Assembly (NCBI GenBank): GCA_002269645.1
Contig: NIVC01000034.1
Location: forward strand, 62,001-126,000
Origin: Macrostomum lignano
Taxonomy: Eukaryota
Length of the DNA: 64,000 nucleotides
Reading direction: 5' to 3'
The notes beneath the pieces were generated by a model. That model did no database searches. It had not been told where the DNA came from and saw only the letters and a list, made by a program, of their open reading frames with translations. The position numbers and the translations under genes were made by a program. Shown here piece by piece: positions 1-29,694 of this stretch (position 1 is the stretch's first letter; each line of letters opens with the position of its first letter).

Positions 1-205
1 TTCCTATCAGGCGTCCAATGTCATCTGGCAGGAGTTCTGTCAGTCTAGTTGCTGAATTTCATAGCGCTTGGGTGTCTGGAGGGACGACAGGATCAGACCC
101 TAGTGCTGGTCAATTGTGTCTTCAGTTTGCATTTAGAGTGAAGGATTCGTTCCATTCTTCTAGTGCCAGCGCGGCAAAACTGGTTCTGCTAAAACGCGTC
201 TCTGG
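1..205 (+). CDS. Cluster A alternative exon A0 (5'-truncated by window edge)
   Basis: Encodes ...LCLQFAFRV...LVLLKRVSG, donor GG|gtagg at 206, phase 2 like the other A exons. Confidence 0.8.
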
Positions 206-3200
206 GTAGGAGTTTTTGCATCATGTTTATTCCCGCTTCTTTAGGCGAGCCTTGCCAAGTTTATTGAATTTGATAGCACACCTGTGGTAGCTGAAATTGT
301 AACCGTTTTTTATGTCTTTTTTTCAAATAAGTTACCCACTGCGTTTCGGTTGACTGCTCCTCAAAATTGCCAAATGTTTGCACATGGAGCGACGGTCAAT
401 TCAATCGAGCTGCCAACTGGAAGGTCGCAATTGACTCCAATAGTCGCTGTGCTTCCTATTGCCTCGTTCCAAATAAGATTAGGTCTCAAGCGATGACGTC
501 ATCACGTAGCTCTTCGGCACAGGCTTACACTGGAAGCTTTCTTAGTGGCTGGATTGTCGCTGAAGAGTCAAGACAGAATCCAATGTGTCTGCAATTCAAT
601 TACAAGTTTGTTCTAGCAGAGCCAGTAATATCCAAGCCTGGATTGCAACTGGCTTTGTTAAAGCGTACATTTGGGTATGTTTTTGGATTAAATTGGAGCA
701 ACGAGTCTTATTAATCAATTTTTAGCTTGATAAAAAATGCATCAAGTTTAATTAGTATATGTAAAGCATCTAGAACTCGTAAATGCCCTCTTATAGCCGT
801 CTCAATTGATTGCTCATCGACCTCGCCTACTTTTTGCACTTGGAGCGATTCACCTTTTAATCGGGCAGCCAATTGGAAGGCCGCAATCGATCCCAGCGTT
901 CGTAGCGGTGGTAGAAGCGCGTCCTATTGCTTGATTCCAAATAGACCAGTAGCTACAGAAGACACTACTCACAGCGGTAGCTTTCTTAGTAATTGGATAA
1001 CCAAAACGAAAGAATCCGGTTCGCCAGAGCAGCAGATGTGTGTTCAGTTTGCGTACAAGTTTATTGGTTCGCCAATGACTAGAATGCATCTGGCTCTGTT
1101 AAAGCGTTCATATGGGTAAGGTCTAAAACCTGTCAGGTAAAAGTGAGCTTTTTACAGTAGAGTTTCTTTGAGCAACGAGTCCTTGTGTATGCTGCTTTTT
1201 CATTTTTGCTATAGGTACGTTTGTACTTGTTTTATTGCGTTATAGTGACATGTCTTGCCTCTTCGATTAATTGCTCGTCCAATTCGCCTATGCTCTGCTC
1301 GTGGAGCGATTATCCATTCAATCGAGCCGCTAATTGGAAGGCAACAATCGATTCTAATAGTCGTTCGTCCTCTTATTGTTTAATTCCTAATGCGGCTTTG
1401 GTGATGCCTATTAATGCAGCGTCTGAACAAGGATTTGCGGCCAGCTTTATTAGCGGTTGGATCGCTGGAAAAAACCAACGCTCGATGTGCTTGCAGTTTG
1501 CGTATAAATTTTTAGTGTCATCTCAATTGCCTGAACGTAGGCAGTCTTCTCTGGCATTATTGAAACGTTCATTTGGGTATGCTTTTATTTCAACTGATGC
1601 GATAAAAAAATGAGTACAAAAAGGTTCTGCTGCCCCCATAGATTAAAAAATTTCGTCAGGAGCGATGCATTGAAAAGCCTTAAAATGCGTCGTATGTTTG
1701 GTCATGAAGCTTTACTCCGGGCCTCTGTGAGACTGTATATTCGGGTGCAACAAAAAACTACTCCGTCTCTTAGAAGTAAAAGTTTTGAGATGGAGCAATG
1801 AGCCTTTATAATGTTAATAGAGTGGAAGTATGATGACGCATGATGCATTTTCTCTGAAAATAATTACTATAGCTACTTCGTCGACACATTTAATTGACTG
1901 CTCATCGAGCTCTCCTATGCTTTGCGCATGGAGCGATGATCCTTACAATCGAGCAGCCAATTGGAAGGTGGCCATCGACCCCAGAACTGGCCACTCGTCC
2001 TACTGCATGATCCCGAATGATCGCGCCGTGTTAGCAGCCACTTCAACACGTCATCAGCAGTTTACTGGCATCTTCCTCAGCAACTGGATTGCTAAGCAAA
2101 ATCTTCAAGCTCAAAGCTCGTCGGCAAGCGAGCATCAGATGTGTCTGCAGTTCTCCTATAGACTAGTTTCAGAATCAGTATCATCTAGTGTACATCTGAC
2201 TCTTCTAAAACGATCTTTTGGGTAGAGTTATAAGTGATTTTTACATTTTTGCATGAGCGTCGTACATAATAGTTCCATGAGTTTAAATGCGAGCCTTGCC
2301 AATACAATAATCAATTAAAGGGTGTAGAATACAAGCCAACTCTAATTCTTTTAAAACAAACACATCCTCACAGAGTCTGTACATGTACATGGCTCTAGAA
2401 TCGATTGCGATTTTTCTAACCAACGCATGTGCCAATATGCCAATGATCCTGCCAACGATCTAGTTGCCTGGCGTTGGACCTCCGTGCAGGTTCCCATGGC
2501 AACGATTCCTACTCGAACAGACGCCGTCTGTCTACTACCAGTAGTAGGCAGTAGAACGCCAGTTGGTCAAGACAGCCTGTCTGGAAAGCTATGGTTTCCA
2601 GGCTGGCTGTCTGCTATTGACCTTGTCAAAGGAGATAGCAGTTCCGCGTCCATGTGCCTAGGGTTCTCTCTGTACTTTACCACAGGAGCTAGTCTTACTC
2701 TATTGAAACGGTCGCGTGGGTATGTTCTTTTACTATGGATCAAGAAGTTTAGAGCGGAAGTGTAAATCTAAATCTTACGTTATTTATTATGTCAGTGATT
2801 TGTAAATAATCGAATCATTATTTAATTTCATTAGTCGCTCTAAGCTTTGGTCTTTAGTTTTTACTGTATCTACATTTGCTTTATTTGCTCAACATTGCGA
2901 ATTAAATTTGTTTGCTTAATTACTTATATAATATTTGATGACCATAGATGTGTACTAACATCATTCGCCTAACTCTAGGAATTAATACTCGTACTTACTG
3001 TAATCTGTGCATTTATTTATAAAAATTTGGCAGCGGGGAAGACTTCAAGGTACCTTGCACCATCGGAGCCTAATTGAAATTTACTTTTTAATTATAATCT
3101 GCCTTTGCTGATTTCCTAAGAGCTAAATAATGTGCGAATTCAAACGGTCTGGTGCAAAGAAATAACGTTAAACGTTTGTTTATTGGCCAATATGCAAGTA

Positions 3201-6200
3201 ATTAACTAATTATCTATGCTCTTTGTAAAGCTTCTTTTTAAATTAGTCATGGTTTTGCGTAAAACTAGGCGTAGTTCATTCTTCCCAACTGCTGATCAAA
3301 CTAGGCGTAGTTCATTCTTCCCAACTGCTGATCAAAAGTAAGAAAAAATGACGGTTTCCAGTACACAGCAGATACCCCCAAATCCTTTTGAAAAAAAGGT
3401 CGTGCATGTCCGGCTCGAAACTCGAAAATGGCTTAGAAGTAAACTCACACTTGTGCAAAAGTGTTACTCTGTGGAAATCTGCTAGCTCGGAAAGCAGTCA
3501 AGCTAATGTTGATGCTACTGAAAGTAGTTCTGCTAGCGGTAGTGGCAGTTGGTCTGGTTGGCGTACAGTTCACGCTAGTATTGTCTCTAGTGCCGACTTC
3601 AAAGTAAGAACTTACACATCTAATGAAGTCTTCTGAAGTGCTGCCCGAAATTATTGTAGTTCAACCCTTTCCAATGTTGCAAAAAGTATTTAGAATCTGT
3701 ATCTTGTCAATTATTTAGGTCCTGCATCTCAGACTCCGAACTGTCAAATGGTCAGAAAGTGATGTCACACCTTTGCAAAAGTGTAGAACTTTGGCGTTCC
3801 AATCAAAAACCAATGCTAAGCAGCTTGTCAAATTGGAATTCAATGCAGCTATCAGTTGGAGTGGAGACAGATTTCAAGGTGATTTTTTTTAAACAAAGAA
3901 TTCTACTTAGCAGAGTACTTAGTAGGTCTTTCCCGCTGTTTGAACTCGAAATTTTCTCTGATTAAACATTTTTTGACACCTGAAGCTACCTCTACCCCAT
4001 TCAGATCTTGCTCGCAGCTTAAAGCAGTTAGGCATGGTGACAAAAAGTTAAGAACATCAAACTGCGACAATTGGGAATTGTGGACATCTGCAGCCGCTAA
4101 TAATGCCCCAGGTGGTAATTGGTTTACCCAAGCTGTTACCATTGAACCAGATACAGATTTCAAGGTTAGACTTAAATCATTAATCCTTTTTATTGTTATC
4201 TTGTTCCCCGCCTGCCAAAGTTCGAGTTTAAGAACATGTTTCTAAAACTTCGATACTACAGTGGATATTTGATATTTCGACAACAAATCCACAAGATCTT
4301 GTACAGTGGCCAGCAATATTAAAATGTCTGGAGCCGAGAAGCGAAAATCTCTCTGCGAAAGTGACGTACTATGGACTAGTGCAGTATCGAACTTGGCTAG
4401 TTGGCGTATAGTGTCTGTAGATTTGCAACAAACTACTGACTTCAAGGTAGAGTACTTGCGCAAATTGCCCTACTTTTAGCTTCCCTGCTGTCAATTTGAG
4501 GACAAGTTTAAATAATGTCTAAATAAGTAGATTTAACTAATTACTAAATCCTTCCAACTCCGCAATATTTATCATAGTTCATGCACAGTGAAAAAGCCAA
4601 AAGAAAGAAAGTTCAGTCTGCACATGTGTCGCAACGAAGATGTATGGACTTCGTCAGCTATTAGGGATAGAGTGACAGCTGCTGGTGAATGGAGAACTAT
4701 TTCGGTTGATCTGAAATCTAATACAGATTTCAAGGTAAACTTTCTTATTGTTCCCTGAGTCTTCCCTCTGCCAAAGCTACTCGTTTTTTCGCAGCTTTAC
4801 TATAAGTGGAAAATTAGTTTTTTGCATTCCCCATAATGAATATAGATCTTGTGTTTCAACGGAAAAGAAAAGAGCCGGTCAGGAAGTGGCGGGACATTAT
4901 TGGTATGAGGCAGTCTAAATTCAATTCTCGATATATACTACTAGAAATTAGTTTTCACTGAGAAATTATTGGTTCAATAATCTATTTCTAGTGAAAATAT
5001 TAAGCTATGGAAAACAGCAGCGCTATATGGACAGCAGTGGACTCCAGTGTCAGTTGACATAGTTACTGGACAAGATTTTAAGGTAAATTATGCATCGTTT
5101 GAAGTCTTCTCCGTGCATGCACTTTTAAAAACGCAGGTCTATGGCGATGATAATCCCAAATAAATAGGGTTGAACCGCTATTTTCGCAGCTCTTGCACAC
5201 AAAAAGTTCGCAAGGAGATGGGCGCCGACTTCAAGTCTGTAGTATGCGATAATCGAGTGGTGTGGAGCTCCGATGCTGCGCTTTATAGCGCCTCTACCCG
5301 CACTTGGTCTAGTGGAGTTGTTAGTTTACCTACTGGGTCCGATTTTAAGGTATCTTCAAAATGACTTTTTCTGGACATTATTGAACTTTTGCCACTAATC
5401 ATATCGGGACCTTGAAGTTTTCCGTTGCAAATAGTTTTCAGGGTAAAAAAACTGACAGAAAGAATAGCTAAATAGAGATTTTGTTACGATTTTACTTAAA
5501 GATCTTGCAGCCAAGAGAGCAGAAGTGTTCATCAACAGTCGGGCAAGGATTCAAGTCGCTTCTGTGCCACAACGAAGTTGTGTGGCGGTCTGTTACTAGC
5601 ATTGAGGCTGAGCAAAGACAAGTTGGTTCCTCGTGGTTGGTGCAGCACGTTTCTTTAGAACCCGGCTCTGATTTTAAGGTACATTATCATTGCGGTATAT
5701 CATGTTTACAGAAATCCATTGGGATGTCTGGGACACCTTGAAGTCTTTCCTGAAAATTTAAATTTTGTGTTGCACCAGAATCTAGTATTTCTACTACTGT
5801 TTTGTCTACTATTTCAACGTCAGATCTTGTAGTCAAGAAAGTACTAGAGTTCGTCAACGATCGGGCAAAGAGATCAAATCCCTGACTTGTCACAATGAGG
5901 TTGCTTGGCGTTCTGATGCCAGTGATATCGGTTCTGTTAGTCATGCTGGGTCTTGGACGCGCCAGAAAGTTAGCATGGAATCTGGATCGGATTTTAAGGT
6001 ATAGCTTATAGCTTATAACTAAATGATTAATGCCTTCTTAAAGTCTTCCCCTGTATTTCTCAAATATTCTGTAGCTTAATCAAAACTAGAGAACTGCACG
6101 ATTTTGTTCTCAACATTAGATTGTGCTCAACTTCTGAGGATAAAGAAAACGATCGTTATACAAGTCCCCATCTGTGCAAGAATAAACGTTCGCTAATAAT

Positions 6201-9200
6201 AATTTCGGTCGCATTTTAAAGTCTAAATCCTGGTGTTTATATTCGGTATCTCTAGATCTTAGGCATCGGTCTGATTTTAAGGTAAATGAAGCTCTTTCTT
6301 GCTGCCAAGCATAGTATAGGATAGTTAAATTGCCGCTTCTGAACAAAGAAAAAAAGTAAATTTTTTATTTCAGGTCTTGTACTCAAGACCATCGTCAGAA
6401 TGAGGGTCTTAAGTATAATTTTGTCACTTGCGGCAATCAAGTAGTATGGAGCGCCGCTCAGCCTAGTGTAGCTCAATGGCAGTACGCTCAGGTTGCATTG
6501 CAGCATTCGCAAGATTTCAAGGTACTTTTCTCACGGTGCTTCCCCGCTGGTATAAATGTGTTAGTTTAAGATTCAACTTTCTAATATTATTGCATTAATT
6601 TTTTAAAACAATGGTTCAGTTCGTGTCTGCAATCTGATCAAGTTCAATCAGATGGCTTGTTCACATCAGTGACATGTAACAATAAGAAATTATGGTTAGC
6701 CGATCAATCTTTAAGTGGCAAATTCAATGGCTGGTCTATTGTCAATGTCGATTTGACTTCTCGTAGGGACTTTAAGGTAAATTACTAGTAATGGGGATTT
6801 GGAATATTTTTGATTGAAGTCTTCCCTAGCAAGAATTATTTCAGTGCTAAAAATTCTCATATTTTATTTTGGCTTTGGCTTTTTAAAATGCCAGATCTTG
6901 TTCCACTTTGGAGGACCGAGAAAATGGTCGATTTATTAGTGCTCACACGTGCAAAAATGAGCGTATCTGGATTGCACCCAACTTAACTGTAAATCCAAAA
7001 GTCTTTAAACGTTGGCAGCTGGCAACTGTGCCGCTCAGTTTTATCCGAAACTCAGATTTTAAGGTGAAAAGTTTTCCCATTAGCTGCCAATTTTATTATC
7101 GAGTTATTCGATTTTTTATTGAGTAGGGTATTAAAAAAAGCAAAATTATTTTTGCACAGTTCATGCACACAAGACCAGCGAGAAACGATGGGTCAATAGT
7201 ATAACTTTACCACTTGTGGAAATCAGGTTATCTGGAAGTCTGTTGACAGCAGTAGCTTGCTTGTCTGGAGGCGTATTCAAATAAGCTTGCAACAGTTAAA
7301 TGATTTCAAGGTTTCTTTTCGGGTTCTTTGGGCTTTTCATCGACTATCAAATAGACTTCCCCGCTGCTTATACTAAATTGTTCAGCTATATGAAACCGTT
7401 CTGCATTGATATCTCTCATGAATTTTTCTGTAATTGAAAAAAAAACAAATTAGTTCGTGCCAGCAGTCGGATCGGGTCAAATCAGACGGTGTTTTCACAT
7501 CGGTTCTGTGCGATAACAAAAAGTTATGGACCACTGGCGTTACAACTGACTACCCTTTGTCAGCTAGAGCAAGTGGTTGGTCTGTTGTGAATGTAGATCT
7601 GTCTTCTAGGGGAGACTTTAAGGTAACAATATTTAAATAATATTCTTTTGAAACTTGCAAAGTACCTTGAAGTGTCTTTTAACTGCCTAATCAACAGTTA
7701 AATCAAGTGTCCAATAAAAATTATGAAAAACATTTTAGCTCATGTAAACAAGCCAATGAAATTGAAAGAAACGAAATTTTCACTTCGATTTTGTGCAAAA
7801 ACAAGCAGCTTTGGTCAACCGCAAATAGTTCATCTGTTCGAACTTGGCTATCTCCTAGTAGCTACAACTGGGACACCATATCAATTTCTATAAATTCCGA
7901 TAGCGATTTTAAGGTATATACGAGCGTAATTAGCTGTCTTCTTTCCACATAATTACAGATGTTTTGGCAAAAATTCAATCAAAATTTGTTAATCGGTTCA
8001 ATATTTAGAGCGTTACATACAAACAAACAAATCTTAGACATTTAGTATATGTGGATGGATGAATGGGTAGATAGTTTAAGTTTAAAAAACGGCTCCTTTA
8101 GCAAGGTATTTTGAATCAGTCTCCGCCATGAAACTCGATAAAATTCAAGAGTTTATCTATCAGAATTGTTTAATTCATTAAGCGTGGCTAATGATCTTAT
8201 TTAGTTCATGCAGCCAATCTGACGTCAATGACAGTGGTAGAACTCGAACTGCCATGCTGTGTCACAGTGATAAACTTTGGATAAGTCATAAAGATGATTC
8301 AAGTAACAGATGGTCTAGCGTGCAAGTTTCTGTTTCCTCGGGAAATGATTTTAAGGTATTAATAGTGACATTGTTAGTTATAGTATTTTTTAAACATGTG
8401 ATCCTCTTAGCATTCAATAAACCCTTTTAGCCAAGATATATCAAGCATTTAAAAGTTTAGGAAACTTTGGCCGTTTTTTCCTTAAATCGGTCGCATGCAT
8501 ACATACATGCAAACTTGCATAGTATAAGCGATCTGACAAATAATCCATATAGGTAAAGTAGATTTTGCTTTCCTTGTGTCTTCATTTTGCTGCCAATTTT
8601 TAAGTGACTCAACTCACAGCGTAAGCTTGTACTAACATTTAAATTATTTCCATCTCAGTTCGTGCCACCAGACTGAGCGTAGCGAGTCTGGCCAGGTGAA
8701 AACATCTGTCACTTGTGACAATGTAAAAATTTGGTCAACACCCGCGACTGCCGCTCTTAAATCTAAGCTAGCTGGGATACACGGAAAATATTCAGTGTGG
8801 AATCCGGCTCAAGTTACCATAACAACATCGGTAGACTTTAAGGTATTTTTGTTGGAAAGATTATTTTCTAGGGTGTCGTTTCTCGCTGCCAGAACGAATT
8901 CTTAGGCACAGCACATTCAAGGAAGTTTTCTTGTCGAAACCAAGAAAAATAGTGAATTTAACTTGTGCGAGAAAGCTTCCTTTAGTTTTGTGCAACGAAA
9001 TGTTACCAGCGCTATTAAATTTTAGCAATACAAACAAACGACGATAATGCAATCTTAAACTTGTAGTTCTTGCCGTACAGTGGAAGCAAAACAGTTTGGT
9101 GGTAGCGGTGTGTTCTGTCAGAATAGCCCTCTGTGGCAGCAATCTTATTCTAGCAGTGTCTCATTGGATGCCAAATGGGCTACAGCTGTTGTTGATGTAC

Positions 9201-11323
9201 AATCGACTTCTGACTTTAAGGTTGTTGATTGTACGGATTATGTATTACTACTGTAATTTTAAGAATCATATAATGCAAATGTAAGATGCAATAGCCAGAT
9301 ATTTTTTAATTTTCTTGGTACTAGAGTAATTTTTTCACTCTTTCTAGACTGGATAATAACATTCCAATACGAAGCGTATCGTCTAAACACTTAGTTATCT
9401 AAATGTTACAGTTATCTCGGTCAACAAGTCAGGTCAGAAAATTACCATTAAGAGTAGATTCATTAAGTCTACACCGACTTAGTAGTATTTATTGACAAAT
9501 ACGAGCGTAGTTGTACGAGTTCTTTGAAAGAACTTGTTTCAAAATGACTCTAGCTTAACATGTCTTTTCAGAAGTCTTGAATGTAGGAAAGCAAAACAAC
9601 CTGAGGAGAGTTTGTCTCGCAGTTGTCTTCGAATTTTAAGCACACTTGAACCTAAAATATACAAATTCCTCAAGTTTGACACGTAACGTTTTTTTTCCCA
9701 ACACCCCTTTATTAGTGCACTTGCTGCCAAAGAAATCTGATAAATTATTTGAGGGTTGGGGATGTAGTTACGGCCCTAAAAGAATTTTGTTTCTTTGTTT
9801 CTAGCTCCTGCGAACGACGCAATGTTGACTTGGAGACTAAAAAAGCTGGCGTATTCTGGTAATACCGGTTGAGTAATATGATAGAACAATAAATAGTTAT
9901 GAGTGCAACAATAAATTATTCATTAATAACTGCAGCAGTTCTTTGCAAACTTATCATCAATTTTAGTTTGTAATAACTTCGATTCTACGATAAATTACTC
10001 ATTATGATTCCTAAAGAAGCGCTAGTTCGATATTATACTGAATTTAATTAGTAAAAGACTTTTAATAAGTTTTCAATATATTAATTTCTAATTTCTAAAA
10101 TTAATGGCACTAAATTATATTTGCTTGGATCTCTGTTAAATTTTCAGTAGTGCTTCAATTAAGTATTGTGATCGATTCATAACCTAGCAATTTAATAGAA
10201 CGGTTATGTGTTTCAAAAAATGCTGTATTGGTTCAAGTTCCGTTTTGTTAGGTTGAGCTACATATATAGTGTCTCTTAGACTAGTGTATCACTTATCAAA
10301 TCGAACCATTGTTACTCAACCGGCATTGCCTGCTCAGTAAATATCCCCGTTACTGCCTGTACAGCCACAGCAAGACCCTGTGGACATCAAAAAGTAATTT
10401 TGGAAGTAGTGCTATTAGAAAATCTTGGAGTCGGCAAGTTATTGATTTAAGAGATGCCTCGGACTTCAAGGTAAATTTAAATATTAGGAAACACTCAAAT
10501 CCTTATGGAACGATAAAAGAGCATAAAACGAAAATGTTAACTTATTTCTTATTTTATTTTTTAGCTCATTTTCGAAGGTACCATTCCGGCCAACAATCCG
10601 AACGCCCGAATTTGCGTTGACAACATCACGGCTTATCATCGACCGTGTCACCGTGAGTTTTTCAGCGGCTTTTTCCTAAGTATCTTTATAAGATAGTTGA
10701 TTAGGTAATGTAGCAGGTACTGATTTGTACTGATGTAATTGATGTTCTATTTCTTAGAAATCGCCGCCTCAGCCTACGAAGCGTCGATGCGTCGCTGGCT
10801 CGAACCAATGGTATTCATCTTCATTGGCGCCCTCGCCTTCGCCCTGATCATCGCCGTGTCCATCTTTGCCATTCGAGTCAACCGTCGTCGCAGCAAGAAA
10901 TTGTCGCCGGGCAGCAGCGAGGACGGCTCTGCTTCGCCGCAGCGACCGAACCGTCAGCAGCATCACCGACGCCAGCAGGAGGCCATGCTGCTGCACGCTG
11001 AACGTCTCGCCGATGGACCTGCTTCGGGTTCAGCCGCCGTCGGCGCTGTGCCGATCGGCCACGGCCACGGGCCCCGGCGCCCGGCTCCGCCAGTCCCGGC
11101 CGAGCAGCCGAGCCTTGACGAGCTGCTTAGCAACGGACATCGAGCTGCTGCTTCTGCTACCGCTCCGGCCGCCGCTGCTGGTCATAACGATCCGCCGCCT
11201 CGCTACGAGGAAGCCATGGGCCTGGTTGCTTCCGCCGCCGCTGGCAGCAGCTCCGCCTCCGACCAGCTGCCGCCGCCGCATCCGCCTCGACTGAATCGCC
11301 GAAACGGCGGTCACGTGGTTTAA
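1..11323 (+). CDS. MAM-domain single-pass transmembrane receptor with two mutually exclusive exon clusters; 5' end lies outside the window. Model: one A exon + one B exon + 10565..10652 + 10758..11323
   Basis: Joined exons rebuild a MAM fold: CDF..C.W (A5 IDCDFSNQRMCQY), S.WI....CL.F.Y, LW....W..V.L...F, LIFEG...ICVDNIT...C. A hydrophobic helix MVFIFIGALAFALIIAVSIFAI, a basic stop-transfer RVNRRRSKK and a PPPRYEEA motif follow. All junctions are GT-AG with compatible phases (1|A|2|B|0|C1|1|C2). Confidence 0.88.
332..674 (+). CDS. Cluster A alternative exon A1
   Basis: ataag|TT ACC CAC TGC ... VDCSSKLPNVCTWSDGQFNRAANWK...LALLKRTFG|gtatgt; 343 nt (3n+1). Confidence 0.85.
797..1115 (+). CDS. 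Cluster A alternative exon A2
   Basis: ttatag|CC GTC ... IDCSSTSPTFCTWSDSPFNRAANWK...LLKRSYG|gtaagg; 319 nt (3n+1). Confidence 0.85.
1246..1576 (+). CDS. Cluster A alternative exon A3
   Basis: ttatag|TG ACA ... INCSSNSPMLCSWSDYPFNRAANWK...LLKRSFG|gtatgc; 331 nt (3n+1). Confidence 0.85.
1873..2221 (+). CDS. Cluster A alternative exon A4
   Basis: ctatag|CT ACT ... IDCSSSSPMLCAWSDDPYNRAANWK...LLKRSFG|gtagag; 349 nt (3n+1). Confidence 0.85.
2374..2719 (+). CDS. Cluster A alternative exon A5 (divergent, closest to the canonical MAM start)
   Basis: tcacag|AG TCT ... IDCDFSNQRMCQY...MCLGFSLYF...LLKRSRG|gtatgt; 346 nt (3n+1). Confidence 0.85.
3026..3053 (+). promoter_or_regulatory. Cluster B candidate docking site TTTGGCAGCGGGGAAGACTTCAAGGTAC
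   Basis: Single copy between A5 and B1. Its reverse complement GTACCTTGAAGTCTTCCCCGCTGCCAAA matches a motif in the intron before nearly every B exon. Confidence 0.82.
3399..3603 (+). CDS. Cluster B alternative exon B1
   Basis: ag|G TCG TGC: SCMSGSKLENG...HLCKSVTLW...W...DFK|gtaaga; 205 nt; purine-rich acceptor. Confidence 0.75.
3719..3878 (+). CDS. Cluster B alternative exon B2
   Basis: SCISDSELSNGQKVMSHLCKSVELW...W...ETDFK|gt; 160 nt. Confidence 0.82.
4005..4164 (+). CDS. Cluster B alternative exon B3
   Basis: SCSQLKAVRHGDKKLRTSNCDNWELW...NW...DTDFK|gt; 160 nt. Confidence 0.82.
4296..4446 (+). CDS. Cluster B alternative exon B4
   Basis: SCTVASNIKMSGAEKRKSLCESDVLWTSAVSNLASWRIVSVDLQQTTDFK|gt; 151 nt; not in the ORF track. 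Confidence 0.82.
4578..4734 (+). CDS. Cluster B alternative exon B5
   Basis: SCTVKKPKERKFSLHMCRNEDVWTSS...EWRTISVDLKSNTDFK|gt; 157 nt. Confidence 0.82.
4846..5082 (+). CDS. Cluster B alternative module B6, split into 4846..4902 + 4992..5082
   Basis: SCVSTEKKRAGQEVAGHY-TG|gtatga...tttctag|T-ENIKLW...QW...GQDFK|gt; the intron interrupts the second Cys codon. Confidence 0.75.
5190..5349 (+). CDS. Cluster B alternative exon B7
   Basis: SCTQKVRKEMGADFKSVVCDNRVVW...TW...GSDFK|gt; 160 nt. Confidence 0.82.
5502..5678 (+). pseudogene. Cluster B exon B8 with an apparent 1-nt deletion (pseudo-exon or assembly indel)
   Basis: Starts SCSQESRSVHQQSGK like B9 but is 177 nt (3n); LCHNEVVW...GSDFK is in another frame. 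Confidence 0.7.
5824..5998 (+). CDS. Cluster B alternative exon B9
   Basis: SCSQESTRVRQRSGKEIKSLTCHNEVAW...SW...GSDFK|gt; 175 nt. Confidence 0.82.
6120..6281 (+). pseudogene. Cluster B exon B10, frameshifted pseudo-exon
   Basis: LCSTSEDKENDRYTSPHLCKNK, then the first conserved Trp is missing; SWCLYSVSLDLRHRSDFK is in another frame; 162 nt (3n). Confidence 0.7.
6374..6521 (+). CDS. Cluster B alternative exon B11
   Basis: SCTQDHRQNEGLKYNFVTCGNQVVWSAAQPSVAQWQYAQVALQHSQDFK|gt; 148 nt. Confidence 0.82.
6620..6776 (+). CDS. Cluster B alternative exon B12
   Basis: SCLQSDQVQSDGLFTSVTCNNKKLW...GWSIVNVDLTSRRDFK|gt; 157 nt. Confidence 0.82.
6895..7063 (+). CDS. Cluster B alternative exon B13
   Basis: SCSTLEDRENGRFISAHTCKNERIW...RW...NSDFK|gt; 169 nt. 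Confidence 0.82.
7160..7310 (+). pseudogene. Cluster B exon B14 with an in-frame stop
   Basis: SCTQDQRETMGQ*YNFTTCGNQVIW...NDFK; TAG at 7197-7199 where paralog B11 has AAG; 151 nt. Confidence 0.72.
7454..7622 (+). CDS. Cluster B alternative exon B15
   Basis: SCQQSDRVKSDGVFTSVLCDNKKLW...GWSVVNVDLSSRGDFK|gt; 169 nt. Confidence 0.82.
7739..7913 (+). CDS. Cluster B alternative exon B16
   Basis: SCKQANEIERNEIFTSILCKNKQLW...NW...DSDFK|gt; 175 nt. Confidence 0.82.
8205..8355 (+). CDS. Cluster B alternative exon B17
   Basis: SCSQSDVNDSGRTRTAMLCHSDKLW...RW...GNDFK|gt; 151 nt. Confidence 0.82.
8659..8842 (+). CDS. Cluster B alternative exon B18
   Basis: SCHQTERSESGQVKTSVTCDNVKIW...VW...SVDFK|gt; 184 nt. 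Confidence 0.82.
9067..9220 (+). CDS. Cluster B alternative exon B19
   Basis: SCRTVEAKQFGGSGVFCQNSPLW...KW...TSDFK|gt; 154 nt. Confidence 0.82.
9805..10470 (+). CDS. Cluster B alternative module B20, split into 9805..9858 + 10365..10470
   Basis: SCERRNVDLETKKAGVF-TG|gtaata...gtacag|C-HSKTLW...SW...ASDFK|gt; intron in the same Cys codon as in B6. Confidence 0.78.
10565..10652 (+). CDS. Constant exon, MAM C-terminus
   Basis: ttag|LIFEGTIPANNPNARICVDNITAYHRPCH-C|gtgagt; phase 0 to 1; single copy. Confidence 0.85.
10758..11323 (+). CDS. Constant terminal exon: transmembrane helix and Pro/Ala-rich tail with PPxY
   Basis: cttag|AA ATC; 22-residue hydrophobic stretch, RRRSKK, PPPRYEEA, stop TAA at 11321-11323. 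Confidence 0.85.
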
Positions 11324-13797
11324 TTTAAAGAGTCAGTCAAGTTTTGAATTAGAAACAGAAAAAACGAGAATTAACGTAAAATGCTATGAATACTACTGCT
11401 GCCCGACAACAACTGAAGTGTATAACTATAAATAAGAATTTGAAATATCGTAAATGTAATTTTGAATATTAAATTAGTACACTTTTGAACAATTCAATTT
11501 TAATAGTTCATTTAGAATGCACTTTGTTTTTTGTCGGGTGAGCAGTGCACTAAGAGTGGTAATAAATGAAACAACAATATTTTGTTAAAAATTTCTGGCA
11601 ATAAAGTTCTGTTTCTTTCTGTTTTAACACTAAATGATTCGAAGGTTTTTTAGTAACCGAAGCAAATGCGGAACATTATTCAGTAGTTCATGGATCAACG
11701 GTTTTGTTTGATAAGTTAATTTTTGTTTTACAAAAGTTTGTTTTGTGTTTTTATTCGCCTATACTCTGTTGAATACACTAGTCGATCGTGTTTTCTATCA
11801 TTTTAGATTTAGAAGTTTACCCGTTCGTTTTTGTAGTTGTGTAATTTTTTGTTTCGTTGTTTTAACTCATCAAATTGTAAACAAATCAGATGTTTGTCAA
11901 CTCGTTTTCAATTTCCCCTCGGCAGTCATTTGTTTTAATTTTGAATATTTCTTTTTTTGTTTTTTTATCTGCATGCCAACTTTAACACTGATTTTCTTTA
12001 GAATTTAGTTCATTTTTGTTGTTTATCGTATATGTTTTTCTTCAAAATTCAATTGCACTGCACAGTAAGAATGATATTGTTGACCGTTTTTGTCTGAAAA
12101 TATTTATTGCAATACCTTTATTATATCAGAAAATTTCAGTTGATTTTCGGTTGTGCACAACTAGCTAGTATTTCTTCAGTCAAATTAGATTCTTAGATCC
12201 TCTAGTCAAACTGGCTGTTTACCCTTTTTTGTATTTTTGTCTCTGTTTTGTACTGTATAACAGTAAATAATATGCACTCCTCATAATATATTAATAACTC
12301 CATTGCGTTCACCAATACGTTTTTAGTAACCTGATTCAACAAGAATTGATTCAGCAAATCTGCTTCGAGCGCTCTGTCGACAGTAGAAATTTTCGTTTTT
12401 TTTGTAGTTTCCCTTATTCGTGAAATTAAATACATTTTATGTAGTTTGTTGTTTTGTCATGAAATTATTGTCGCTGTAAAGTTGATAAGTGGCTTAAAAG
12501 TATTTATAAATTTTATTGTGTCTCAGTATACAAAATTGCTAAAACATATGCTGTTAATACTGCTTCAGTATATATTTGTGATTTTTAGCAGTTTAATCTA
12601 CCTTACTCTAGAAATTAATTTTTCTTATTATTGCAATATTGTGTTTTATATTTTTTAAAACTTTTTGCGATTTATATTGTGTTATTATCGATATGCATAT
12701 TTTTGCTAATATACTCTAATCTACTAGCATATTTGTCGAGCGTCTACTAAAACTTTTGTTGGCAAATTTCAATTGTATATTTTTATCCTGGTGTTTGATT
12801 AACCTGAAATTCGTGTCTATTCTCCTATATCTAAATATAATACAATAAATCTCTAATCCACTATACTAAATATTTATGAATAGTTTTATTTAGATATTCG
12901 CTATTCATAGTTACTTTAAAAGGAATTTGTTACTCTATATTATACTATAAAAATTTCATGATATCCAAAAAAACAATTAAGCTTTGCTCGCTTGGCTTAT
13001 CCAATCAGTTAACAATTAGTCGATCCTATTCATTTATAAAGTCTGTCAATTTAAAAATCACATCATTTTGTCAAACTCGTTTCTTTTGTCTGTAAAAAAA
13101 CTTTTTTTGTAAAAAAGTTGCCACATTTAACCAAAAAATTCGATACTTAAGGTATTGCAAAAGCGATTTATGTTTGTTATTTCTTCCTTCGAAACTTCTT
13201 TCTGTCTATCAGCAATTGCGAATTTTAAACCCTTAAAATTTATAACTGTTACTAACTGTTACTGACTGCGCAATAATTTTTAATGTTAGGGTCGTAATCT
13301 TTGAACGAAAAACTATTCAATAAGACAAATATATGCCCTGATCGTTATATCATTTTTCTTCTCAAATAGTGATTTTTCGATTTTCATAATTTTATAATTG
13401 TTTCTATTAGTTTTTCAGTAAAGTTCTTAGAAATATAAGTACTAAGACAAGAGATGATTATTAACATACTGGTTATGGACCGAAATAGCCATCTCTCATG
13501 CTTAAAGTTCCCTGTTTAGATTACGCGCTTAGCTATAAGGAGCCAACCCCTTGTGGGCACGTGTTATCGTCAAGTTACCATGCTATGCGACCCCTCGCGA
13601 GCTAGTACATAAATAGTTCATAGTTCAGTAAATAACTAATTCATTAATTTCTACTAATATAATTCAATAATTCATACTAATTCAAAAAACTAATTCAAAT
13701 AAAAAATTCATAGTTCAGTTGTAGAATTTTTTAATATGAGCTTACTAAATACTTCAAAAATATTGCATTTATTCCAGTAAAACGTAAGCACGTAAGC

Positions 13798-16717
13798 ATG
13801 TCTGCCGAAACAGCGGGAGGCTCCAGCGGCGGTGGCAGCAACAATCTGACCGAATACTTGAAGCGCTACACTGAACCTCTGCCAAAGAAAAAGAAACGCC
13901 GCGTCGATAAGGGCGGTGTTAGCAGCGACGATGGTAGTAAAAAACGTGTTAAAAGACGCGACAAGCGATTAAAACCTGTTATCATAGGTGAAGACTTCGA
14001 AGATGAAGTCGATGAAGAAGAGGAGGCTGCAATAGCTCTGGCCAAGCAGCAGTTGGCTGAATCGGCTGCCGGACGTAAGAAATTATTCAAATCCTCCTTT
14101 CAGACTGTTGCTGGTCCAGACGATGATAATGATTCGGAGTCAAGCGGTTGGCAGATACCCAACAGTAATCTTTCTCTACCACGCAAAGGAAACCGAAAAA
14201 ATGGTAGTCAGTTTTCGCAGCACGGACAGCAAAAACCCGATAGCGACTTGTCGTCACCACGTCGAGGGCAAGGGTCACAAGATTCTGACTTGTCACCACC
14301 GCGCCCGGCACAAGGATCAAAAGATAACGACTTGTCGCCATCACGGCGAACACAAAGACGTCGAGATGATGACTTGTCTCCACCACGTCGAAGGCAAAGA
14401 CCTAGAGACACAGACTTGTCGCCACCACGCCGAGGACAAGGACCTCGAGATGATGACTTGTCGCCTCCTCGCCGTAGCCAAAAACCTCAAGATAATGACT
14501 TATCGCCACCTCGTCGAGGTAGACCTCAAGATGACGACTTATCGCCACCAAGACGAGGACAAAAACGTCAAGATAACGATTTATCGCCACCAAGACGAGG
14601 ACAAAGGCGTCAAGATGACGATTTATCGCCCCCAAGACGAGGACAAAGGCGTCAAGATGACGACTTGTCCCCACCTCGTCAAGGTAGACCTCAAGATGAC
14701 GACTTGTCTCCACCAAGACGAGGACAAAGGCGTCAAGATGACGACTTGTCCCCACCTCGTCAAGGTAGACCTCAAGATGACGACTTGTCTCCACCAAGAC
14801 GAGGACAAAGGCGTCAAGATGACGACTTGTCCCCACCTCGTCAAGGTAGACCTCAAGATGACGACTTGTCTCCACCAAGACGAGGACAAAGGCGTCAAAA
14901 TGACGATTTATCGCCACCAAGACGAGGACAAAGACCTCAAGCTAACGAATTGTCGCCACCGCGAAGGCGACCACAGCAGGACGCTGATTCTTCGCCGACC
15001 CGACGTGGAGACCCAGGTCCCAACCAAGCAAAAGGCGCTTTCGACGAAGACAGCGGTAGCGACGCCGAAGCGAACGCTCTATCGGCTCAGGTGCGCCGAC
15101 GGGCTAAACTGACGCACCCGAGCGAGGTGATGCTGGATGAAGATGACGATGAAAAGTTGGGCAGGTGAGTTATCTTGGTCTCTTAAAATACTTATTTAGC
15201 ATGGATTTTTGGGCATAAGCTCATGGCTTTCAGGGGATCTTTAATACTCGTAGCGCATAAATTGGTTTCAAAGTAAAAAACTGAGGTAAACAAACTATCA
15301 GATTAGTGTGGTAAAACGCCACCAGTACACAGTTGCTACCTATAGCCGTAATGAGGCTTCGATGGATTTTTAGTTCATCCTACAGATCTTAAAAGACTGG
15401 ATTACCCATGCTACTCAAAGTAAGGGTGACCCAGCAACTGAGGATTTGGGAGTCTGGCCCAGCAACTGACACTCTGGGAGGCTGGCCCAGCAACTGACAC
15501 TCTGGGAGGCTGGCCCAGCAACTGAGGATTTGGGAGGCTGGCCCAGCAACTGAGGATTTTGGAGGCTGGCCCAGCAACTGACACTCTGGGAGGCTGGCCC
15601 AGCAACTGACACTCTGGGAGGCTGGCCCAGCAACTGACACTCTGGGAGGCTGGCCCAGCAACTGAGGATTTGGGAGGCTGGCCCAGCAACTGAGGATTTT
15701 GGAGGCTGACCATGTTCCTAAGAAATATTTTTCAGTTATAGTGAGTTCAAATTCCTATCAGATTTGCCATAGAAAGGAGGTTGTCAGGAATGAAATTTCA
15801 AAGTTTGCTGGACTACGTACCAAAATTTATGTTTATATAACAAATCCAAAACATTTATTGTACCTTATTAAAGATATCCAGTAAATAGAATTGTCTAGCG
15901 GAAGCCATAGAACTCGTAGCCAACATTGGTTAGCAAAGGCTGTAGTGGTGGCCTTTCTCATTGTCCTTATCAATTAGTTATGCTTTTTATCAGTAGAAAT
16001 GTTTAGCTACAATAATTGCTGAATACTCCTAGCTATAGAAAATGAGCCAATCCGTAACGCCCCACTAGATACGCTACGGCAATTCGTCGCAAGAAGCAGC
16101 CGGATCCCAGAAAGTCAAAAAAGGCCGCCGAGAAGCCAGAACCAACGCCCGAAGAGTTGGCCAAAGCTGAGGAATTAAAAGCCCAATACGCTCGCTGGGG
16201 CTCCGGCTTGGCCCAGGCTGCGGAACGCGAGCAGCGCGCTGTCGAAGCTCAAATTGAGTCGGCTAAGCCTCTAGCTCGAAGTCGCGATGATGCCGATTTA
16301 GACTCGATGCTGCGAGGCCAACTCCGGGTCGACGATCCCATGGCGGAGTTTCTGCGCGACTCGGAGCGTCGCCGAGCCGAGAAGGCGGCTAAGAAAGCGG
16401 CTAAGAAAGCTTTGAAAAAGAAAAATAAGAAAGAAAAAGAGCGAAAGAAGATCAAACGGGAGCCAGGTGAGAAACTCGGCAGGTTAAGTCGATCGGCTTC
16501 GTCCGCATCGCCGTCGCCGTCGCCGCCCCCGCCGCCCAAGCAGCGGCCTCGCTACGACGGCCCGCCCGGGCCGCCCAATCGATTTGGCATCGAGCCCGGC
16601 TACCGCTGGGACGGCGTCGATCGGAGCACCGGCTTTGAGAAGCGCTACTTTGAATCGATTAATCAGCGTAAAGCGCTTAGCCAGGAAGCTTATAAATGGT
16701 CAACTGAAGATATGTAG
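13798..16717 (+). CDS. BUD13: BUD13/CWC26 RES-complex splicing factor, join(13798..15164,16069..16717)
   Basis: N-terminal EYLKRY, about 19 DxDLSPPRR repeats, C-terminal ARYARWGSG-like segment, KPLARSRDDADLD, DDPM and PPNRFGIEPGYRWDGVDRSTGFEKRYF; phase-2 GT-AG intron. Confidence 0.92.
15330..15880. mobile_element. Dispersed repeat carrying a 28-bp minisatellite (ggcccagcaactgacactctgggaggct), copy 1, in the BUD13 intron
   Basis: Array at about 15420-15710; both flanks (cttaaaagactggatt...ctactcaaagt; aaatatttttcagtta...) recur around the copy near 17 kb. Confidence 0.6.
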
Positions 16718-24811: not shown

Positions 24812-26871
24812 ATGAACCTCCTACAGATGGTCACATCGCAACAGTCGGAGAAGCTCGAACGTTTAGCTAAGAAAAGTCCGCCAGTTTGCGTTGCTTCTCC
24901 GACTGCGTCAGCTGTTGTTGGAGCTTCGTCTCCGACGACGCCGTCAGCTAACGGCGGTCAGCAATGCGCGGCGGAATTCAGCGACCCAGATTTGCGAAAC
25001 CGGCTGACGCCAGTGCAGTACGAGGTCACTCAGCTGAGGGGAACAGAGAAGTAAGTATAAGTGGTTTTGATTGGCTGGTATGATTCTGATTGGTTAGAAG
25101 CTCATATCAGTGATTCTGATTGGCTGCGACCTCATTGAAGAGATTTTGATTGGCTCACACCTCAATACAGAGATTATGTTCGGCTGGGATCTCAATACAG
25201 AGATTCTAATTGGCTGAGATATCAATAGAGAGATTCTAATTGGTTGCGGCCTCATTGCAGAGATTTTGATTGGCTCAGACCTCAATACAGAGATTCTGAT
25301 TGGCTGAGATCTCAATACAGAGATTTTGATTGGCTGAGATCTCAAAAAGGTGATTTTGATTGGTTGAGACCTCAATACAGAGATTCTGATTGGCTGAGGT
25401 CTCAATAGAGTAATTCTGATTGGCTGGGATGTCAATAGAGCAGTTCTGATTGGCTGGGATCTCAGTGGAGCAATTCTGATTGGCTGGGATCTCAGTGGAG
25501 CAATTCTGATTGGCTGGGATCTCAGTGGAGCAATTCTGATTGGCTGGGATCTCAGTGGAGCAATTCTGGTTGGCTGGGATGTCAGTGGAGCAATTCTGAT
25601 TGGCTGGTATGTCAATAGAGCAATTCTGATTGGCTCGAAAAGACCTGTAATTATGTAGTAGTTTCGAACTGACGGAGTTTGATTTCAGTGGTCTAAAATT
25701 CCGATTCACCCTAATATTATAATATTTGTTTCAAATCCCCGTTTCTACCCCGCGTTGCTAGGCGCTTCTCCGGTCAGTATCTGCGCGAAAAATCACCCGG
25801 CGTTTACGAGTGCGTTGTCTGCGGCACTGAACTGTTCTCCTCCGGGCACAAATTCGACTCCGGCTGCGGCTGGCCAGCCTTCTATGACGTCATGCACGAT
25901 GGCCGCATCGCCATGGTTAAGGACACCTCGCATGGTTGGTTCTAAATGTGCTTCATGCGTGCAATTTAACATCCATCTCACTCCACATCCACTCGACCAC
26001 TCCACATCCACCCCACTCTCCACATCCACCACTCCACATCCACCCCATTCCACATCCACCTCACTCCACATCTACCACATTCCACATCCACCCTATTCGA
26101 CATCCACCCCACTTCACATCCACCCCACTCCACATCCACCCCACTCCACATCCACCCCACTCCACATCCACTCCAATCCACATCCACTTCACTCCATATC
26201 CACCCCACTCCACATCCACCCCACTCCACATCCACTCCAATCCACATCCACTTCACTCCATATCCACCCCACTCTACATCCACCCCACTTTACATCTACC
26301 ACATTCCACATCCACTCCATTCCACATCCACCCCATTTGACATCCACCTCACTCCACATCCTCTCCATTCCACATTCACTCCACATCCACCTCACTCCAC
26401 ATCCTCTCCATTCCACATTCACTCCACATCCACCTCACTCCACATCCACCTCACTCCACATCCACCTCACTCCACATCCACCTCACTCCACATCTACCTC
26501 ACTCCACATCCACCTCACTCCACATCCACCTCACTCCACATCCACCTCACTCCACATCCACCTCACTCCACATCCACCTCACTCCACATCCACCTCACTC
26601 CACATCCACCTCACTCCACATCCACCTCACTCCACATCCACCTCACTCCACATCCACCCACCAACATCCAACAGGCATGATGCGCTACGAGGTTCGCTGC
26701 GCCAAATGCGGCGCCCACCTCGGTCACGTGTTCGACGACGGGCCCAGGCCGACGGGTCTGCGCTATTGCGTCAACTCGGCTGCGTTAAATTTTTCACCAG
26801 AAAAACCGGCAACAACTCCGACTGAGGCTCAGGTGGACGAGCAGTCGAAAGCGGAACGTCAGGATCTGTAA
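24812..26871 (+). CDS. MSRB: Methionine-R-sulfoxide reductase (zinc-binding, Cys-type MsrB), join(24812..25050,25762..25934,26675..26871)
   Basis: [70 protein letters not shown]; start codon uncertain. Confidence 0.92.
25065..25640. repeat. 30-bp minisatellite (gattctgattggctgagatctcaatacaga) in msrB intron 1
   Basis: About 19 tandem units. Confidence 0.9.
25960..26670. repeat. C/A-rich minisatellite (actccacatccacctc-like) in msrB intron 2
   Basis: Tandem ccacatcc cores up to the acceptor. Confidence 0.9.
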
Positions 26872-27059
26872 TGCTTGGAACTTTTAATATATAATTGCCG
26901 TAGTGCGTTTGTAATTGACAAGCGGTGTTTTCCTGTTGTTTTATTACCCTGCTCTCTACCTGATTATAATTTTGCATCGTGTTTGTCAGCGCTAATTAAT
27001 ATCACACGCTTTCATGGATCACCAAATCTGCTGATATCTGGACTGTGAACTGGACCCAC

Positions 27060-27850
27060 GAACCCTCCTCCAACTGTGCGTCTCTCTCCCCCTAAACACC
27101 CACCCCACCCCCTTTAACTGTTCGCCTCTCTGCCCCTGTACACCCACCACATCCCCTTTAACTGTTCGCCTCTCTGCCCCTGTACACCCACCACACCCCC
27201 TTTAACTGTTCGCCTCTCTGCCCCTGTACACCCACCCACCCCTTTAACTGTTCGCCTCTCTGCCCCTGTACACCCACCACACCCCCTTTAACTGTTCGCC
27301 TCTCTGCCCCTGTACACCCACCACACCCCCTTTAACTGTTCGCCTCTCTGCCCCTGTACACCCACCCACCCCTTTAACTGTTCGCCTCTGCCCCTGTACA
27401 CCCACCACCCCCTTTAACTGTTCGCCTCTGCCCCTGTACACCCACCACACCCCCTTTAACTGTTCGCCTCTCTGCCCCTGTACACCCACCACACCCCTTT
27501 AACTGTTCGCCTCTCTGCCCCTGTACACCCACCCCACCCCTTTAACTGTTCGCCTCTCTGCCCCTGTACACCCACCACACCCCCTTTAACTGTTCGCCTC
27601 TCTGCCCCTGAACACCCACCCCACCCCTTTAACTGTTCGCCTCTCTGCCCCTGTACACCCACCACACCCCCTTTAACTGTTCGCCTCTCTGCCCCTGTAC
27701 ACCCACCCCACCCCTTTAACTGTTCGCCTCTCTGCCCCTGTACACCCACCACACCCCCTTTAACTGTTCGCCTCTCTGCCCCTGAACACCCACCCCACCC
27801 TCCTCCAACTGTGCATCTCTCTCCCTTCATACCCAACCACCCTCCTCCGA
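27060..27850. repeat. About 45-bp minisatellite (tttaactgttcgcctctctgcccctgtacacccaccacacccc)
   Basis: About 16 tandem units. Confidence 0.9.
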
Positions 27851-28679
27851 CTTTCAATAATTATTCATAACAGCTGATAATCAGTGTTTTTCTCTTTACT
27901 TTTTGTTGTACTGTTTGACATTATCACTATATTTCTATATTTATTAACTTTTTGCCCCGCGTTCTTTAATCGTTTTTTACATAGAATTCTACAATCTGCG
28001 ATATCAGAAATAAAATGTTTATATAATTTTTATTTCTCTTTCCTATTTTGTTGTTGTCGCTTTTTCCCTCAGATAATTTTAATACGCTTTCTTCATTTCA
28101 GTAGTATCTATAGATTTTTTGTTATTAGGATAAAATATGTAAATTCTCATTGAGTTGTGCTTTTGATTTTTACATGTAATACCCAAAAAATGCATACTTT
28201 ACGTTGAGTTTAGACTAGCAATCCTTTAGTGTTGAAATACCGGAAAGTATTATTATTGAATTTCAATTAGAAGTTATATCAATATTTAATTCTTGATGTT
28301 CGCATCATTTTATAAACTATTGTAAATTTTAAACACCAAGTTTATAACGCGTTATGTTTATTCTGCATGTGCGTAATATACTACTAGCTTGTACTAATAA
28401 TGATGCTATATAAACCAGTATTTATTTAAGGAAGTTTGAAAATTTATTTAAAATCACCTCTCAGTGCCTGTTGGTTTCTGTGCGTTGAATAATTTAACCA
28501 AACTTATTGTTTAAGTGAAACTGTTTAATTTGTTCTAATAATCACTCACTCACTTTCATCTTTTTCGCTTTTTTGAACCAATGAAATAACAAACTGATAC
28601 TTGATGCCTGTTCGTTACTGCGCTGCGTTGACTATTGAAATTATTAAAGAAAGTTTTTTGTCTTCAAGTTATTCTTTTT

Positions 28680-29470
28680 TAATCTCCACTCTCAAAATCA
28701 CCCCCAAGAATCTCTACTCTCAAAATCAACCCCAAGAATCTCTACTCTCAAAATCGCCCCAAGAATCTCCATTCTCAAAATCGCCCCAGGAATCTCCATT
28801 CTCAAAATCACCCCCAATAATCCCCATTCTCAAAATCGCCCCCAAGAATCTCAGACCTCAAAATCGCCCCTAAGAATCTCCATTCTCAAAATCGCCCAGG
28901 AATCTCCATTCTCAAAATCACCCCCAATAATCCCGATTCTCAAAATCGCCCCCAAGAATCTCCATTCTTAAAATCGCCCCCAAGAATCTCAGACCTCAAA
29001 AATCGCCCAAGAATCTCCATCCTCGAAATCGCCCCAAGAATCTCAAGCCTTAAAAATCGCCCCCAAGAATCTCCACTCTCAAAATCGCCATCAAGAATCT
29101 CAGACCTCAAAAGTCGCCCAAGAATCTCCATTCTCAAAATCGCCCCCAAGAATCTCAGACCTCAAAATCGCCCCCAAGAATCTCCATTCTCAAAATCGCC
29201 ATCAAGAATCTCAGACCTCAAAAGTCGCCCAAGAATCTCCATTCTCAAAATCGCCATCAAGAATCTCAGACCTCAAAATCGCCCCCAAGAATCTCACTTC
29301 TCAAAATCGCCCCAAGAATCTCAAGCCTTAAAAATCGCCCCCAAGAATCTCCGCTCTCAAAATCGCCCCAAGAATCTCAATTCTCAAAATCGCTCTCAAA
29401 AACCTCTACCGTCAAAATAACCCTAAGAATCTCCACCCTCAAAATCGCCCCCAAGAATCTCCATCCTTAA
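28680..29470. repeat. 28-bp minisatellite (ctcaaaatcgcccccaagaatctccatt)
   Basis: Over 25 tandem units. Confidence 0.9.
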
Positions 29471-29694
29471 AAAGTCGTTAATAAGTCTTTAAGACCCCGT
29501 TGGCATTACTGTTACAGAATGCAAGCGAGCAGAGTATAAAATCGTGCTAAATGACTTAGCTAATGTGGCAAATTTTAAGTAGCAATCATATTAGCCTTCA
29601 AAAATTTTCTGTTATATTATCTCTTCGATCTAAAAGCAAAGGTAGTTCAACAGTTCAACAGAGTTTCAGTATCATCTCCATCTGTACGTCAATC

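Follow-up and report, generated by a model that had tools for sequence, protein, structure and literature searches.

In BOX15_Mlig029915g2, a gene of the free-living flatworm Macrostomum lignano, the intron that leads from the last A exon to the first B exon contains an element that is complementary to a short sequence 5′ of the acceptor of each of the 20 B exons, and we propose that this element serves as the docking site in a set of competing RNA structures, of the type known from Dscam exon 6, by which one of these 20 mutually exclusive exons would be chosen. The element comprises 36 bases (ATTTGGCAGCGGGGAAGACTTCAAGGTACCTTGCAC) at positions 3025–3060 of the window, by which we mean the whole stretch of 64,000 nucleotides (nt) that was analyzed (contig NIVC01000034.1 of assembly GCA_002269645.1, positions 62,001 to 126,000); all features below lie on the plus strand of this window unless stated otherwise. 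Over its first 21,323 bases the window matched the M. lignano contig with 0 mismatches. The docking site contains an exact copy of the end of a B exon together with its 5′ splice site, and within it an AG and a GT enclose 16 nt that would be in frame as an exon. We give a probability of roughly 0.6 to the full account argued here, namely that the element is the docking site, that it shares ancestry with the B repeat unit, and that the 16-nt unit is a by-product and not an exon in use.

BOX15_Mlig029915g2 codes for a membrane protein with a single MAM domain. Three pieces make up this domain: an A exon, of which there are 14, a B unit, of which there are 20, and the C exon, which is constant. 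The spliced A+B+C product matched the Pfam MAM profile (PF00629) with an expectation value (E) of 1.4e-9 and 38.4 bits, relative to a curated cut-off of 26.4, and covered positions 7–158 of the 158 in the profile; the annotated product, P0001 (422 amino acids), contains window exons B3 and C and the transmembrane exon. Eighteen of the 20 B units are intact. Each totals 148–205 nt, and all are of length 3n+1; a unit starts with ag/N TCN TGY, giving G-S-C (G-E-Q-K-C in B8), and ends with GAYTTYAAR/gt, giving D-F-K/GT, where the slash marks a splice junction.

Pairing of the docking site with the B selectors

Pairing was assessed with RNAduplex, using the region 3022–3062 against 120-nt windows upstream of the 20 B acceptors, with the windows upstream of the A acceptors and 300 random windows, drawn from the remainder of the 64,000 nt, as controls. 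The mean duplex energy was −34.0 kcal/mol for the B windows, as compared with −21.0 for the A acceptor windows and −21.1 (standard deviation 4.9) for the random windows; the difference was significant by the Mann-Whitney test (p=1e-12), and 14 of the 20 B windows fell below the 1st percentile of the random ones. A candidate selector was present for every one of the 20 B units, those of B1, B10, and B20 being weak, and the predicted duplexes with the docking site extended over 16–30 base pairs (bp). When we scanned for ungapped complements scoring 26 or more, there were 12 matches in the 7.5-kb array, all of them intronic and on the plus strand, versus 2 in the other 56 kb of that strand. There was no second copy of the full docking element in the window, the other antisense matches in the cluster being exon ends of 11–12 nt, and the docking region had no significant fold of its own (z −0.46).

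The positions of the selectors showed to which exons they belong. The distance from selector to next acceptor was 40–85 nt in 19 of the 20 units, B19 being an outlier at 173 nt; whereas the distance to the preceding donor was variable, ranging from 1 to about 500 nt, and no selector was found when we checked the last intron, which runs from B20 to C. Each selector was therefore assigned to the exon downstream of it, giving one selector per unit. All of the selectors overlap the docking core GGGGAAGAC; from it, roughly half of them continue into TTTGGCAGCGGGG, which forms the 5′ half of the docking site, and a similar share into GACTTCAAGGTACCTTGC, which forms the 3′ half. As they all share the core, only one can pair at a time, and the pairings are mutually exclusive. 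We concluded from these results that 3025–3060 very probably is the docking site of the B array, an assignment with strong support in silico.

In the pre-messenger RNA, we propose, the docking site pairs with a single selector at a time, and this pairing would loop out the intervening B units and so bring the A-exon donor next to the acceptor of the chosen B exon.

The selectors, located by their complementarity to the docking site, follow one another through the array. That of B1 is present in two copies (TCTTCCCAACTGCTGA; 3280–3295 and 3316–3331, within 3280–3331), and is followed by those of B2 (3603–3653, core 3624–3634), B3 (3909–3941, core 3924–3940), B4 (4196–4220), B5 (4459–4498, core 4480–4497), B6 (4749–4776), B7 (5090–5117, core 5098–5114), and B8 (5405–5439). 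The B9 selector (5721–5767, core 5735–5752) contains the exon-end motif in its reverse complement. Beyond it lie the selectors of B10 (6030–6066), B11 (6286–6310), B12 (6539–6553), B13 (6814–6852), B14 (7068–7097), B15 (7353–7369), B16 (7655–7688, which includes CAAAGTACCTTG), B17 (8100–8127), B18 (8585–8603), B19 (8868–8894), and B20 (9720–9731), the last being the weakest of all. The doubling of the B1 selector is due to a perfect 36-nt tandem duplication at 3262–3336 (2.1 copies, 100% identical), which looks very recent and may bias the choice towards B1.

To judge from its motifs, the A cluster is built on the same docking/selector design. RNAduplex of whole A introns against the 300-nt intron between the A and B exons gave indiscriminate pairing and was uninformative; a motif search then located the A docking site, TTTGGCAAGGCTCGTTGCTCC, in intron 1, about 80 nt after exon 1 and about 4.5 kb upstream of window base 1 (10148–10170 in the coordinates of locus L001). 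It is unique, and is a perfect complement of the A selector consensus GAGCAACGAGCCTTG. Motifs of the GAGCAACGAGCCTTG type were found by motif scan in 9 of the 13 introns between A exons, and weaker variants were seen by eye in the other four and in intron 1 upstream of A1; within the window, the putative A selectors are at 696–710, 1170–1184, and 1793–1807, with weaker ones near 247–266 and 2286–2305. We checked the A docking site for likeness to the A-exon end and for an AG..GT unit and found neither. The same 8-mer, ATTTGGCA, opens both docking sites (3025–3032 in the window and 10146–10153 in L001); several A exons end ATTTGG/gt, and TGCCAA is frequent at selector ends in both clusters. Shared origin, a protein-binding site, and chance are all candidate causes of these resemblances.

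A B-exon end within the docking site

The first-pass annotation of this DNA had described the docking site as a mimic of a B-exon 3′ end, and both its reading of the bases and the resemblance were confirmed. Positions 3030–3057 read gcag/C GGG GAA GAC TTC AAG/gtaccttg, the 3′ part of which matches the end motif GAYTTYAARGT and the 5′ splice site exactly; the exact copy (GACTTCAAG/GTA) occupies 3041–3052. On the plus strand of the window there are 21 occurrences of GAYTTYAARGT, one at each of the 20 B ends plus the one in the docking site, and on the minus strand there is a single occurrence, inside the B9 selector. As simple arithmetic gives a chance expectation of about 0.1 per strand, we take the copy of the exon end to be genuine and no product of chance. 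One might still suppose that the element is neither a docking site nor a relative of the B exons; but the strength of the pairing (p=1e-12), the restriction of the 11-nt motif to the B ends and the docking site, and the parallel design of the A cluster make this hardly credible.

The same annotation had also pointed to a perfect 12-nt palindrome at 3046–3057 (CAAGGTACCTTG), and caaggtaccttg is indeed its own reverse complement. Copies with at most one mismatch occur elsewhere only in the B16 selector. Taken alone the palindrome is a weak signal, because in 64 kb chance alone should produce about 16 perfect palindromes of 12 nt (arithmetic). The start of the C exon (10565–10590, CTCATTTTCGAAGGTACCATT) resembles docking bases TTCAAGGTACCTT, with which it could possibly form 8 bp through the shared GGTACC palindrome; this likeness may be a mere coding coincidence (F-E-G-T).

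How far the likeness to the B exons extends bears on where the docking site came from. A profile of the whole B unit matched the docking region over 3028–3059 only (E 0.007–0.011 in the 2–8 kb searched), aligning it to the last ~22 exon nt and 10 intron nt, and the significant similarity to B ends is confined to about 12–13 nt (aGAYTTYAAG/GTA). At positions −27 to −10, the docking site agreed with B exons at 5.4 of 18 positions, relative to 4.5 (standard deviation 1.9) for random sequence and 6.3 for B exons compared with each other. The profile search showed no homology to B exons upstream of 3028, and no other truncated B remnants or intermediates in the array. When the AG is read through, the docking site codes for F-G-S-G-E-D-F-K, which is like the B ends SGSDFK, PGSDFK, and SGNDFK, a likeness that is suggestive only. 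The earlier proposal that the docking site arose from a decayed B exon is thus plausible in view of the exact copy of exon end and 5′ splice site, but it is unproven, because the similarity past about 13 nt is no better than random. A "decay series", leading from intact unit to half unit to docking relic, was dropped, as B6 and B20 proved to be intact exons that are split by an intron.

The simplest account, we infer, is that the docking site and the B repeat unit have an ancestor in common. Most likely, the source of the docking site's 3′ half (GACTTCAAG/GTA) was also that of the repeat unit: this half may be what is left of a B unit that stood at the array's 5′ edge, or it may derive, in inverted form, from a selector whose former partner was an exon end. 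A related scheme keeps the function and changes the origin: the docking site would have arisen by inverted partial duplication of a selector-bearing intron segment, and would have inherited its exon-end look through the complement of the ancestral selector. This fits with the 5′ half of the docking site (TTTGGCAGCGGGG), which is complementary to selectors and not B-exon-like, and with the fact that no B-exon homology was seen upstream of 3028. However, there is no flanking inverted homology past the paired core, and with one species such an origin is indistinguishable from the relic model; we consider it unlikely.

Alternatively, the resemblance might itself be under selection, the docking site serving as an exon-end decoy that draws off selectors which would otherwise mask the 5′ splice sites of B exons. 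Complementarity to GACTTCAAGGTA is seen in about half of the selectors, which are thus able to pair with real B 5′ splice sites; by direct reading, docking bases TACCTTG are complementary to YAAG/GTA. About 9–10 of the 20 selectors cover the exon-like half of the docking site, and an exon end and the selector that follows it form a predicted local hairpin in five or six units (B1, B6, B8, B9, B15). The other half of the selectors, in contrast, pair only with the 5′ half, which is not exon-like, and selector position follows the downstream acceptor, not the upstream donor. Moreover, the local duplexes do not exceed 11 bp, versus 16–30 bp with the docking site, and a masked donor on the chosen exon would presumably impede splicing to C. 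Selection for mimicry is, in our judgment, improbable, and hairpins that mask 5′ splice sites were downgraded as candidates because they occur in only five to six units and because selectors track the acceptor downstream of them.

The 16-nucleotide unit

The proposed micro-exon, recognized by its sequence pattern, comprises the 16 nt at 3034–3049, between an AG at 3032–3033 and a GT at 3050–3051. That it is in frame was upheld: joining A13, 3034–3049, and the exon at 10565 gives ...LLKRSFG-GEDFK-LIFEGT..., the unit being 3n+1 in length, and the junctions would read ...TTTGG/CGGGGAAGACTTCAAG from the A-exon end and GAAGACTTCAAG/CTCATTTTCGAAGG into C. We scored its splice sites with position weight matrices built on 32 real sites of BOX15_Mlig029915g2. 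The AG scored 3.7 bits, at the 37th percentile of real acceptors, and the GT 7.8 bits, at the 40th percentile of real donors; of decoys, 17% of AGs and 2.3% of GTs scored as high. A TACTAAC lies about 73 nt 5′ of the AG, and a further AG separates the two. Three in-frame AG..GT units of at most 60 nt in the B region reached both scores, including this one, and as the other two are the last 19 nt of B10 and of B20, the score reflects the exon-end motif. Preservation of the frame is likewise a weak signal, because its prior is 1 in 3 once an AG is present. The one protein on record for the gene, P0001, uses B3, and a B-less product did not turn up in a collection of 5.8 billion proteins.

According to the first-pass annotation, the docking site might double as a default exon: when unpaired it would give A + 3034–3049 + C, an in-frame isoform that lacks B, and pairing would hide the AG or the GT. 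If this were true, one element would both pick among 20 exons and by default yield a B-less receptor instead of a frameshifted transcript. The proposal gains from the frame of the unit, since splicing A straight to C, with B skipped, shifts the frame into stop codons; from splice-site scores that only three in-frame pseudo-exons of at most 60 nt in the B region attain; and from the location of the AG or the GT within most of the predicted duplexes. The more specific claim, that the splice sites are hidden whenever a selector pairs, was only roughly right, as the AG is paired in 16 of the 20 duplexes, the GT in 13, and both in 10.

Other evidence opposes a default micro-exon. Besides the 1-in-3 prior for frame, the frequency of decoy AGs as good as this one, and a score that is that of the exon-end motif, the A docking site has no such unit. 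The B-less product would also lose two invariant Cys, two invariant Trp, and the W..V.L strand that precedes DFK. In a PDB profile search, this W..V.L segment aligned, weakly (E 0.34), with NWKIAHVVL, just before KFRYLFQGT, in the MAM domain of meprin; MAM domains have a beta-sandwich fold, from which we would expect that the B-less protein would not fold. A structure prediction intended for judging the B-less domain was poor (predicted local distance difference test score of 44) and was not used. Finally, with two copies of the B1 selector within about 250–300 nt, the unpaired state would probably be short-lived. Use of the unit as a default B-null micro-exon is thus unsupported and, we believe, very unlikely. 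Rather, we propose that the AG..16 nt..GT unit is a by-product of ancestry and pairing constraint; sitting in the paired core, it would be occluded soon after the first selectors, about 250 nt downstream, were transcribed.

Several points weigh against the account that we favor. The splice-site scores of the 16-nt unit fall inside the range of those of real sites, and past about 13 nt the docking site is no more like the B exons than random sequence is. The selectors belong to tandemly duplicated units, and their similarity to one another is to be expected from duplication; only their shared complementarity to a unique upstream element speaks for a function. Moreover, the choice of exon, the mutual exclusivity of the exons, and the non-use of the 16-nt unit are predictions from the sequence.

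The gene, its relatives, and known systems

The last six of the 14 A exons, each ending ...LLKRxxG/gt, are inside the window at 1–2719: A9 (partial) to 205, A10 at 332–674, A11 at 797–1115, A12 at 1246–1576, A13 at 1873–2221, and A14 at 2374–2719. The B array, with its 20 units, occupies 3399–10470: B1 is at 3399–3603, B2 at 3719–3878, B3 at 4005–4164, B4 at 4296–4446, B5 at 4578–4734, B6 at 4846–4902 and 4992–5082, B7 at 5190–5349, B8 at 5516–5678, B9 at 5824–5998, B11 at 6374–6521, B12 at 6620–6776, B13 at 6895–7063, B15 at 7454–7622, B16 at 7739–7913, B17 at 8205–8355, B18 at 8659–8842, B19 at 9067–9220, and B20 at 9805–9858 and 10365–10470. The introns of B6 (89 nt) and B20 (506 nt) lie inside the second Cys codon, and both units are intact. 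The pseudo-exons B10 (~6106–6281), with a frameshift, and B14 (~7160–7310), with an in-frame stop, have both kept their DFK/GT end, selector, and acceptor; if chosen, they would give non-productive messenger RNAs. They are like the docking site in having kept the DFK/GT end and unlike it in being full-length, as the docking site represents about 31 nt at most. The array is followed by the constant C exon (LIFEGTIPANNPNARICVDNITAYHRPCH; 10565–10652) and by an exon for the transmembrane and cytoplasmic parts, with a stop codon at its end (10758–11324). The whole gene (window 1–11324 plus L001 10002–26006) appears to be an undescribed hypervariable receptor with a Dscam-like architecture in a flatworm; our searches of the literature turned up neither a docking/selector system in a flatworm nor an array of MAM exons. 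Satellites are abundant in the rest of the window (14245–14960, 25082–29472, 58902–64000, and others), among them 42/81-nt coding-like repeats at 14245–14960, strongly C-rich arrays at 25969–27812 (GC skew −0.66), and a 23-nt repeat that fills 58902–64000.

A profile search, and then a search with the Trichobilharzia protein, identified the same gene in Protopolystoma, Trichobilharzia, Schistosoma margrebowiei, Heterobilharzia, Opisthorchis viverrini, and cestodes. In the loci that we examined, which covered the interior of the array short of its 5′ edge, S. margrebowiei (L004 903–7621) has at least 4 B-type exons upstream of the C exon, ending DYK/gt or DFK/gt, O. viverrini (L005 341–7182) has 6, and a cestode contig (L006 542–7560; Logan SRR22558388) has at least 13, ending DFQ/gt. 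The presence of orthologous arrays in trematodes and a cestode indicates that the B array predates the split between Macrostomorpha and Neodermata. Each B unit of O. viverrini and of the cestode consists of two exons around a micro-intron of about 30 nt, at the same position as the intron of M. lignano B6 and B20; this intron is either ancestral and retained in these two units or was lost in the other 18. A search for docking and selector sequences as 10-mers shared among the O. viverrini introns found none, and no inverted-repeat hub was found in the cestode locus. In the last intron of O. viverrini, between the B array and the C exon, CTTGTAGTC (L005 9172–9191) complements the B exon end GACTACAAG exactly, and might serve, downstream of the array, as a docking element for exon ends.

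Neuronal-type micro-exons are cassette exons of 3–27 nt. The 16-nt unit in the docking site is like them in its size, in its flanking AG and GT, and in keeping the frame; it is unlike them in lying inside a strongly paired RNA element and in that it would replace, rather than extend, a core segment of 50 residues, and it is known as a pattern of bases. The main value of the finding is as a clue to the origin of docking sites, within a gene that is noteworthy in itself, and the model can be tested because M. lignano is tractable for transgenesis.

For arthropods, Graveley reportedly described in 2005 the docking site and selector sequences of the Dscam1 exon 6 cluster. The M. lignano B cluster resembles that system, which has been reviewed (PMC6071210; PMC8791459; PMC12962786), in having one docking site in the intron 5′ of tandem homologous alternative exons and one selector upstream of each variable exon, in the use of the same docking core by all selectors with one pairing at a time, and in the shift of frame that results when the cluster is skipped. 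It differs in its flatworm host and in that a single domain, of the MAM and not the immunoglobulin type, is built from two clusters, with 14 exons in A and 20 in B. It appears, then, that a docking/selector system on the scale of Dscam, with 14 × 20 choices in one MAM domain, exists outside arthropods, which is weightier than the exon-end copy. A further difference is that the docking site here carries the exact end of a variable exon with its 5′ splice site, a feature which is undescribed for Dscam in the papers cited here.

The origin of docking sites is an open question in the field of mutually exclusive splicing, for which the current model is purely intronic. In that model (Ivanov and Pervouchine 2018; PMC6071210), the selectors are copies of one arm of an ancestral stem, generated by tandem duplication of the exon together with flanking intron, and the arm that was not duplicated became the docking site, both arms being intronic. 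A docking site that contains an exact copy of an exon end and a 5′ splice site would be direct evidence, at the level of sequence, that such sites can originate either by truncation of a repeat unit or from a stem by which the splice site was once masked. In contrast to the model, the docking arm of M. lignano resembles an exon end with its 5′ splice site, and this suggests either that the ancestral stem included the splice site or that the docking site is a truncated first unit.

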